Of a stretch of DNA of 64,000 bases, positions 45,552 to 45,725 are shown one piece after another. Positions within the stretch are counted from its first letter, which is position 1. Every line of letters starts with the position of its first letter. Below the pieces are notes generated by a model. The model worked only from the letters and a program-made list of their open reading frames with translations. It did no database searches and was not told where the DNA came from. The position numbers were made by a program, and so were the translations under genes. This stretch comes from Saccharolobus solfataricus P2. GTDB lineage: Archaea; Thermoproteota; Thermoprotei_A; Sulfolobales; Sulfolobaceae. The stretch lies in assembly GCF_000007005.1 (NCBI RefSeq), contig NC_002754.1. One strand, written 5' to 3'.

Positions 45552-45725
45552 TTGGTTAGAGTAATCACTTTTAAAGCAGAGGAGGAGCTTTTGATAAAAC
45601 TGGATCTCTTTGCATTAAATAATAGAATGAGCAGAAGTGAAGTAATTAGAATGGCTATAGAAAAATATTTAGAAGAAGCCGCCGGCGGGATTCGAACCCG
45701 CGACCGCCGGCTATCTAGGCAGTAA
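45552..45725 (+). CDS. Ribbon-helix-helix transcription factor (57 aa, aCcr1/CopG-like); absent from the ORF track; 3' end overlaps antisense tRNA-Thr
   Basis: Manual translation MVRVITFKAEEELLIKLDLFALNNRMSRSEVIRMAIEKYLEEAAGGIRTRDRRLSRQ*; GAGG SD 5' of the TTG; classic RHH strand-helix-SRSE..R.AI pattern. Confidence 0.85.
   Translation: MVRVITFKAEEELLIKLDLFALNNRMSRSEVIRMAIEKYLEEAAGGIRTRDRRLSRQ

Follow-up and report, generated by a model that had tools for sequence, protein, structure and literature searches.

The stretch of DNA analysed here, referred to as the window, comprises 64,000 nucleotides of contig NC_002754.1 of Saccharolobus solfataricus P2. At the centre of this report is a short ORF with a TTG start that codes for an RHH protein of the sequence MVRVITFKAEEELLIKLDLFALNNRMSRSEVIRMAIEKYLEEAAGGIRTRDRRLSRQ. 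It runs into a convergent tRNA-Thr gene, which is followed by tRNA-Gln and nrdJ. With cdvA, CdvB-type ESCRT-III genes, nrdJ, a TFIIB-family gene and TFE-beta, the genes of the window are in keeping with Sulfolobales. The same window holds cdvA and cdvB2 as well as six exact AGTATTA heptamers. All of these features are collected in Table 1, together with two C/D-box sRNAs.

Table 1. Features of the window considered in the text, ordered by position (position 1 is the first nucleotide of the window).
Feature	Position	Strand	Evidence or remark
AGTATTA box at cdvB2	7157..7163	+	54 nt upstream of cdvB2 ATG, just after TATA-like AATATAG
cdvB1/B2-type ESCRT-III paralogue (cdvB2)	7217..7882	+	NCBIfam NF041005 cell_div_CdvB1_B2, 391 bits, cutoff 350
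C/D-box sRNA sR2	11722..11775	+	Rfam 59.6 bits
cdvA	31996..32712	-	Pfam CdvA E=1.3e-43
Proximal cdvA aCcr box AGTATTAC	32714..32721	-	Ends 2 nt before ATG; matches published -10..-2 site
Distal cdvA aCcr box AGTATTAC	32746..32753	-	Directly after TATA box CTTTATAAGTATTAC; matches published -46..-40 site
AGTATTA at AbrB/PhoU regulator	40970..40976	+	Overlaps TAA stop of upstream gene; ~22 nt upstream of AbrB/PhoU TATA box
RHH repressor gene, very probable aCcr2 orthologue	45552..45725	+	57 aa, TTG start, GAGG 6 nt upstream
Predicted folded RHH core, residues 1-43	45552..45680	+	AlphaFold2: N-terminal strand, helix 11-23, helix 28-43
tRNA-Thr(UGU), convergent with aCcr2	45677..45766	-	Rfam RF00005 62.7 bits; ARAGORN -i; 15-nt intron ~45713..45727
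aCcr2 C-terminal tail AAGGIRTRDRRLSRQ + stop	45681..45725	+	Antisense to tRNA-Thr
tRNA-Gln(CUG)	45937..46011	+	Between aCcr2/tRNA-Thr and nrdJ; ARAGORN; Rfam 59.9 bits
nrdJ-promoter aCcr box AGTATTAC	46126..46133	-	GGTAATACT on + strand; ~57 nt upstream of ATG 46190
nrdJ, adenosylcobalamin-dependent ribonucleotide reductase	46190..48706	+	TIGR02504 NrdJ_Z 757 bits
C/D-box sRNA sR11	50127..50185	-	Rfam 50.3 bits
AGTATTA upstream of tfeB	58600..58606	-	70 nt after tfb2 (TFIIB-family) stop, 108 nt upstream of tfeB ATG

An earlier note on this DNA, made from the letters alone, had seen in the 57-aa product a resemblance to the aCcr1 family and had asked whether it equals an already published aCcr paralogue. 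The resemblance is confirmed by the NCBIfam profile aCcr1_fam (NF053762), which matches residues 3-40 with 71.8 bits (curated cutoff 60, E=2.9e-20), and Pfam RHH_1 matches residues 5-42 (E=2.3e-6). With regard to the paralogue the answer is aCcr2. The S. islandicus REY15A protein ADX85224.1 (57 aa) is identical to the window protein in 54 out of 57 positions and shares a 90% cluster with it, and it possesses R3, T6, K8, S24 and T49, the residues given for aCcr2/SiRe_1157 in PMC13199686. The S. acidocaldarius orthologue, which has 43 aa and Thr5 and follows sufBD, agrees with Saci_1391 as published. When the window was searched with a profile of 22 orthologues, no further aCcr-family ORF was detected. 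We regard it as very probable that the ORF is the S. solfataricus orthologue of aCcr2 (SiRe_1157 / SiL_RS14755 / Saci_1391) and that the family does use the boxes at cdvA, cdvB2 and nrdJ as operators. Both the identity of aCcr2 and the AGTATTA boxes at these three genes are already in the literature; the finding is correct, not new.

In the alignment of the 22 aCcr2 orthologues the regulatory T6 and the DNA-contacting K8 are invariant, and R3, likewise a DNA contact, is nearly so, with K in two Acidianus sequences. S24, a phosphosite of the kinase aCcrK, is absent from the S. solfataricus protein, which has N24, and the position varies between N, K, R and S among the orthologues. Judged from this alignment, S24 appears to be a feature of the S. 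islandicus protein and not one that defines the family. As a phosphomimic at S24 abolishes DNA binding of S. islandicus aCcr2 (PMC13199686), the presence of N24 indicates that phospho-control may differ in S. solfataricus. For the comparison of loci a genome collection was scanned with an alignment of the 42-aa core as query, which led to 18 loci. The same scan with the full 57-aa query, limited to 600 candidates, gave no loci, which we read as tail patterns (e.g. GIRTRDRR) matching tRNA genes and filling this limit.

The predicted structure agrees with an RHH protein. AlphaFold2 assigns block pLDDT values of 86-96 up to residue 40, followed by 68 and 51 in a tail without secondary structure. 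The best Foldseek matches of the model are CopG, CopA-SO, ParD, Arc and ORF56 of the S. islandicus plasmid pRN1, with approximately 43 residues, an rmsd of about 1 Å and a probability of about 1.0, yet all E-values were above 0.07. A sequence search of the PDB (phmmer) found no solved aCcr structure, the best match having E = 0.09. According to the model the folded domain would stop at about residue 43.

All six AGTATTA heptamers listed in the earlier note are present, beginning at 7157 (+), 32715 (−), 32747 (−), 40970 (+), 46127 (−) and 58600 (−). Their description as intergenic holds for most of them; the one at 40970 shares bases with the stop codon of the preceding gene. If the whole window is regarded on both strands, the heptamer is not enriched (27 found vs 24.8 ± 5.6 in dinucleotide shuffles). 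If only intergenic DNA is counted, 6 occurrences stand against 1.87 ± 1.33 expected (P = 0.012, 2000 shuffles), so that the motif statistics speak for enrichment between the genes and not for the window at large, and the former rough estimate of about one expected site was a mild underestimate. This calculation is based on a refined gene map with 3,257 nt of intergenic DNA, in which stop codons were taken as non-coding and the window edge was excluded, the cdvA start was set to 32712, a spurious 115-aa ORF was dropped, and small ORFs and RNA genes were added. A cruder gene map gave 6 intergenic sites vs 2.4 expected (P = 0.034). The 8-mer AGTATTAC occurs three times in intergenic DNA, at both cdvA sites and at nrdJ, compared to 0.22 expected (P = 0.0015), and over the window at large the palindrome core GTAWTAC shows no excess (7 vs 8.9 expected). 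The intergenic enrichment of AGTATTA is real, about three-fold, and carried by known sites. One further AGTATTA outside the large ORFs, at 24223 (−), lies within codons 1-3 (ATG AGT ATT A) of a 72-aa ORF (24014..24232, −) that is zinc-ribbon-like with four CxxC pairs and has no match in Pfam or NCBIfam.

The known sites correspond closely to published ones. From the sequence and the box positions we infer that the true start of cdvA is the ATG at 32712 and not the longest-ORF start at 32793. The upstream region then has the layout CTTTATA-AGTATTAC-(24 nt)-AGTATTAC-C-ATG, and the aCcr boxes published for cdvA are located at -46..-40 and -10..-2 (PMC9976892). The ESCRT-III gene of Table 1 is ESCRT-III-2/CdvB2 by synteny. 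A 93-aa ORF (6854..7135, −) diverges from it, which places the box at 7157 within a shared divergent promoter region of 81 nt; a 115-aa ORF (6888..7235, +) laid over this promoter has no family match and is probably spurious. The nrdJ box is kept in two other Saccharolobus loci (L002, L005) and in S. islandicus (L030), with diverging flanks. In Table 1 of PMC9976892 the promoters of cdvA, ESCRT-III-2 and NrdA are listed as box-bearing and bound in EMSA, and the motif was reported for these three promoters in all Sulfolobales species examined there. The view of the boxes at cdvA, cdvB2 and nrdJ as regulatory sites thus coincides with published, EMSA-verified targets. By analogy, these four of the six sites (two of them at cdvA) can be regarded as genuine aCcr-family operators.

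AGTATTA is the published operator of aCcr1 and of SIRV2 gp21 (PMC9976892), and the aCcr box is given in PMC9976878 as a 9-nt near-palindrome, A(T/G)G(A)TA(G)A(T/G)TACN. Both aCcr2 and aCcr3 bind the cdvA promoter; their ChIP-seq motifs are similar, the one of aCcr2 being more degenerate. Exact AGTATTA may therefore mark sites of aCcr1 or aCcr3 better than those of aCcr2. As to a mechanistic aspect, S. solfataricus aCcr2 would act as a dimeric RHH repressor, judging by the 95%-identical S. islandicus protein, and its N-terminal β-ribbon with R3, T6 and K8 could read the near-palindromic box A-GTA-W-TAC. The paralogues aCcr1 and aCcr3 would have their genes in other parts of the genome and recognise similar boxes, and phosphorylation may lift the repression by aCcr2. 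In the literature, specific binding to the box and repression of the targets have been demonstrated for the proteins of S. islandicus and S. acidocaldarius. The S. islandicus protein has been reported to be essential, constitutively expressed and phospho-regulated. Its overexpression in S. islandicus led to enlarged cells with more than two chromosome copies (PMC13199686); contrary to this, overexpression of SiL_RS14755 (aCcr2) gave no phenotype in PMC9976892. Overexpression of aCcr1 was accompanied by up-regulation, not repression, of nrdA (PMC9976892). To the model of Sulfolobales cell-cycle control by aCcr1, aCcr2 and aCcr3 our main finding adds nothing: S. solfataricus has the same gene and the same boxes.

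A detail beside the published aCcr work is the overlap of aCcr2 with the tRNA-Thr gene. The final 49 nt of the ORF are antisense to the intron-bearing tRNA-Thr(UGU). The default run of ARAGORN missed this tRNA, and with the option -i the intron was called as (40,15). Read in reverse complement, the acceptor stem, the T-arm, the variable region, the anticodon stem and the intron supply codons ~43-57 and the stop codon, the stop TAA (45723..45725) being located inside the intron. The main texts of the aCcr2 papers that were searched for "tRNA" make no mention of this overlap, and it is a fresh observation. Likewise, the main texts of the aCcr papers that were searched do not bring up the T-loop base that sets the length of the protein, the location of T49 in the disordered tail or the missing box of the aCcr2 promoter, all described below.

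The length of the protein depends on a single base of the tRNA. In other Saccharolobus, Sulfolobus, Metallosphaera and Sulfurisphaera the T-loop is TTCAAAT, which reads ATT-TGA in antisense, and the orthologues ending with this TGA have 45-48 aa, a terminus ...GGI or ...AGI and a tRNA overlap of 19 nt. S. solfataricus and S. islandicus have TTCGAAT instead. As position 45693 is C here and T in the relatives, TGA becomes CGA (R48, 45693..45695) and the product has 57 aa instead of 47 aa. This change, A to G at position 57 of tRNA-Thr, adds a basic tail of 10 residues including T49. The ORFs of S. acidocaldarius and Ca. Aramenus have their own stop abutting the tRNA, with an overlap of 1 nt, and the Acidianus region is rearranged and free of a tRNA overlap. 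In the protein alignment the tail is confined to S. solfataricus and S. islandicus, and no orthologue retrieved from another genus has it. The convergence of the RHH gene and tRNA-Thr appears, from these comparisons, to be old and widespread, and the 10-residue extension would be a recent by-product of a tRNA polymorphism, predicted to be disordered. The 14 residues of the tail after about residue 43 are probably dispensable.

The tail might instead be a selected, functional extension, for example a basic element for DNA or kinase docking by way of T49, and the overlap might couple the expression of aCcr2 to the transcription of tRNA-Thr. The convergent arrangement is indeed kept across at least five genera, four of the 10 residues are Arg, and aCcrK phosphorylates T49 in vitro, where the exchange T49D lowers DNA binding slightly (PMC13199686). 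There is also no oligo-T terminator until ~45828, so that the transcript probably extends in antisense across the entire tRNA gene. On the other hand, the tRNA and its intron fully determine the sequence of the tail. Orthologues finish at 40-48 aa, in some cases with a stop that directly precedes the tRNA (S. acidocaldarius, Ca. Aramenus), disorder is predicted for the tail, and the effects of T49D are mild. We consider a selected tail unlikely and prefer its reading as a by-product of the tRNA sequence. The lineage-specific, tRNA-derived origin of the tail is an argument against a general role for T49. One must keep in mind that in the S. islandicus aCcr2 used in experiments the C-terminal 10 residues, including T49, are read-through antisense to a tRNA gene.

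A further difference between the species pair and its relatives is found in the promoter of the gene itself. A GTAWTAC box is located 14-22 nt upstream of the aCcr2 ATG in a Saccharolobus MAG, S. tokodaii, S. acidocaldarius, two Metallosphaera and an unclassified Sulfolobales MAG, and with one mismatch in a Ca. Aramenus MAG. The promoters of S. solfataricus, at 45470..45551 of the window, and of S. islandicus read TTTATAAA at the homologous position, followed by a TTG start. On comparison of these promoters, the aCcr box appears to have been lost from S. solfataricus and S. islandicus, which fits the constitutive expression of aCcr2 reported for S. islandicus, and the box in the other Sulfolobales suggests that aCcr2 may be auto- or cross-repressed there. 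This would predict an auto- or cross-regulation that is missing from the S. islandicus model. One could go further and propose that aCcr2 has been rewired in S. solfataricus and S. islandicus by loss of the box, the change from ATG to TTG and gain of the tail, the constitutive, kinase-gated state being derived, the gene elsewhere being auto- or cross-repressed and possibly cyclic, and the tRNA overlap possibly affecting expression; we hold this broader scenario to be doubtful. Taken as side observations, the tail, the lack of conservation of S24, the invariance of T6 and the promoter box are of modest relevance for work on the aCcr model.

The earlier note had joined all six heptamers to a regulon of cytokinesis, dNTP supply and basal transcription. 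The first two parts stand, with cdvA, cdvB2 and nrdJ as published targets; the sites at the AbrB/PhoU regulator and at tfeB are not conserved in orthologous promoters. For AbrB/PhoU six promoters were compared (a Saccharolobus MAG, two Acidianus, Ca. Aramenus and two Metallosphaera). The heptamer at 40970 is missing at the homologous position in five of them (L006, L008, L009, L011, L023), and the remaining one, from Acidianus (L007), has TAATACT at another position, directly upstream of the TATA box. Conserved in all six is TTTATAAACRCYGTTTAA (40990..41042 in the window), a TATA box plus inverted repeat, which is likely to be the operator of the AbrB-domain regulator itself. The heptamer at 58600 is missing from three metagenomic tfeB orthologues (L024, L025, L026; 61-88% protein identity) with a near-identical core promoter. 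Both sites are located upstream of the TATA box and lack the 3' C of the full box. Given this location and the lack of conservation in relatives, the sites at 40970 and 58600 are probably chance occurrences, and their number matches the chance expectation of 1.9.

Alternatively, all six heptamers could be functional operators, and the regulon would extend to the AbrB/PhoU regulator and TFE-beta. This draws on the excess of intergenic sites (6 vs 1.9 expected, P = 0.012), on the 1407 ChIP-seq peaks of S. islandicus aCcr2, which indicate that many promoters are bound, and on the reported repression of tfb2, the neighbour of tfeB, by aCcr1. The four published targets alone explain this excess, however, and two more sites are what chance provides. 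Site 40970 is lacking in the closest Saccharolobus MAG as well as in four out of five other orthologous promoters, site 58600 is lacking in three orthologous loci despite the conserved core promoter, and both are outside the zone of -50..0 that holds 816 of 840 promoter peaks in the published ChIP-seq. An operator function of all six sites is accordingly quite improbable in our estimation, and we retain the four sites at cdvA, cdvB2 and nrdJ. The published link to basal transcription is a direct repression of tfb2, not tfeB, by aCcr1 in S. acidocaldarius (bioRxiv 10.64898/2026.09.06.749720). In the window gar1 (59553..59825), a TFIIB paralogue (58675..59556) and TFE-beta (58115..58492) form a cluster on the − strand. 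The TFIIB paralogue is divergent, overlaps gar1 by 4 nt and is probably tfb2, and the gar1 promoter contains GGTATTAT approximately 50 nt upstream of the ATG.

With respect to its neighbourhood, the order sufB-sufD-RHH-tRNA-Thr-tRNA-Gln-nrdJ is identical in the window and in S. islandicus, as are the TTG start and the tail. In S. acidocaldarius and S. tokodaii sufBD-RHH-tRNA-Thr is kept and is followed by other genes, not nrdJ, and in Metallosphaera and Ca. Aramenus the RHH gene adjoins tRNA-Thr. The proximity of nrdJ to aCcr2 is specific to Saccharolobus and therefore implies no functional pairing. We rejected, as extremely unlikely, the reading of the ORF as the decayed remnant of a viral or plasmid aCcr homologue, truncated where an integration site falls within the 3' half of tRNA-Thr and no longer a working gene. 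In its favour, the ORF enters a tRNA gene, and archaeal att sites are usually tRNA 3' halves; plasmids and viruses of Sulfolobales often carry aCcr-like RHH genes (AFV1 ORF48, fuselloviruses), the genes beyond the tRNAs vary between strains (L003, L004) and the start codon is TTG. Against it, the pair RHH-tRNA-Thr is present in Saccharolobus, Sulfolobus, Sulfurisphaera, Metallosphaera and Ca. Aramenus, and sufBD precedes it in all cases in which the upstream genes were read (Saccharolobus, S. acidocaldarius, S. tokodaii); this synteny across genera effectively refutes the idea. In addition, the RHH domain is complete, and the S. islandicus orthologue is reported to be essential and expressed.

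Several observations concern the surroundings of aCcr2 in their own right. Two metagenomic Saccharolobus contigs (L003/L004) have other genes in place of nrdJ after the tRNAs; one of them encodes a 1069-aa Prim-Pol, the second MFS transporters, and a further Saccharolobus locus (L002) has about 1 kb of additional DNA ahead of nrdJ. The pair of tRNA-Thr and tRNA-Gln looks, from these arrangements, like an insertion hotspot. The draft genome of Metallosphaera yellowstonensis MK1 (NZ_JH597770.1) contains two identical copies of the RHH gene and tRNA-Thr, 13.9 kb apart, flanked by repeats of ~640 bp in permuted order with a 48-nt repeat at the edges; the duplication may reflect an integrated element or else an artefact of scaffolding. 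In S. acidocaldarius (CP046615.1) a second aCcr2-like RHH gene (49 aa, MRVINFK...) is located among small unannotated genes and adjoins a VirArc_Nuclease gene, in a region that looks like integrated viral or plasmid DNA. About 1.4 kb from S. acidocaldarius aCcr2 there are a fragment of an SSV1 D-335-type integrase and a tRNA-Arg. Directly 3' of the sufD stop (45467..45500) the element TAGTTTCGnTnnAnnCTCTC is kept across several genera, and the remaining spacer diverges.

Among known systems the closest one is aCcr2 of S. islandicus (SiRe_1157, Yang et al. NAR 2026, PMC13199686), which has in common with the window protein the TTG start, the tail with T49, the residues R3, T6 and K8 and the neighbouring genes, and differs from it by I15V, N24S and V31I. 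aCcr1 (SiRe_0197 / SiL_0190 / Saci_0942) and SIRV2 gp21 belong to the same family, with the RHH fold and the operator AGTATTA(C) (PMC9976878, PMC9976892), and the verified targets cdvA, ESCRT-III-2 and nrdA of aCcr1 are shared with the boxes of the window. Nevertheless aCcr1 represents a separate clade of 58 aa with a ...ETVPVAKVEKVKL tail and 54-58% identity to the window protein; its expression is cyclic, and its gene is located elsewhere, outside the window. CdrS of Halobacteria, CopG, pRN1 ORF56 and Arc are likewise RHH repressors of small size that act as dimers on short palindromes, but their sequence similarity to aCcr2 is distant (PDB phmmer E >= 0.09), and their targets and biological role are different.
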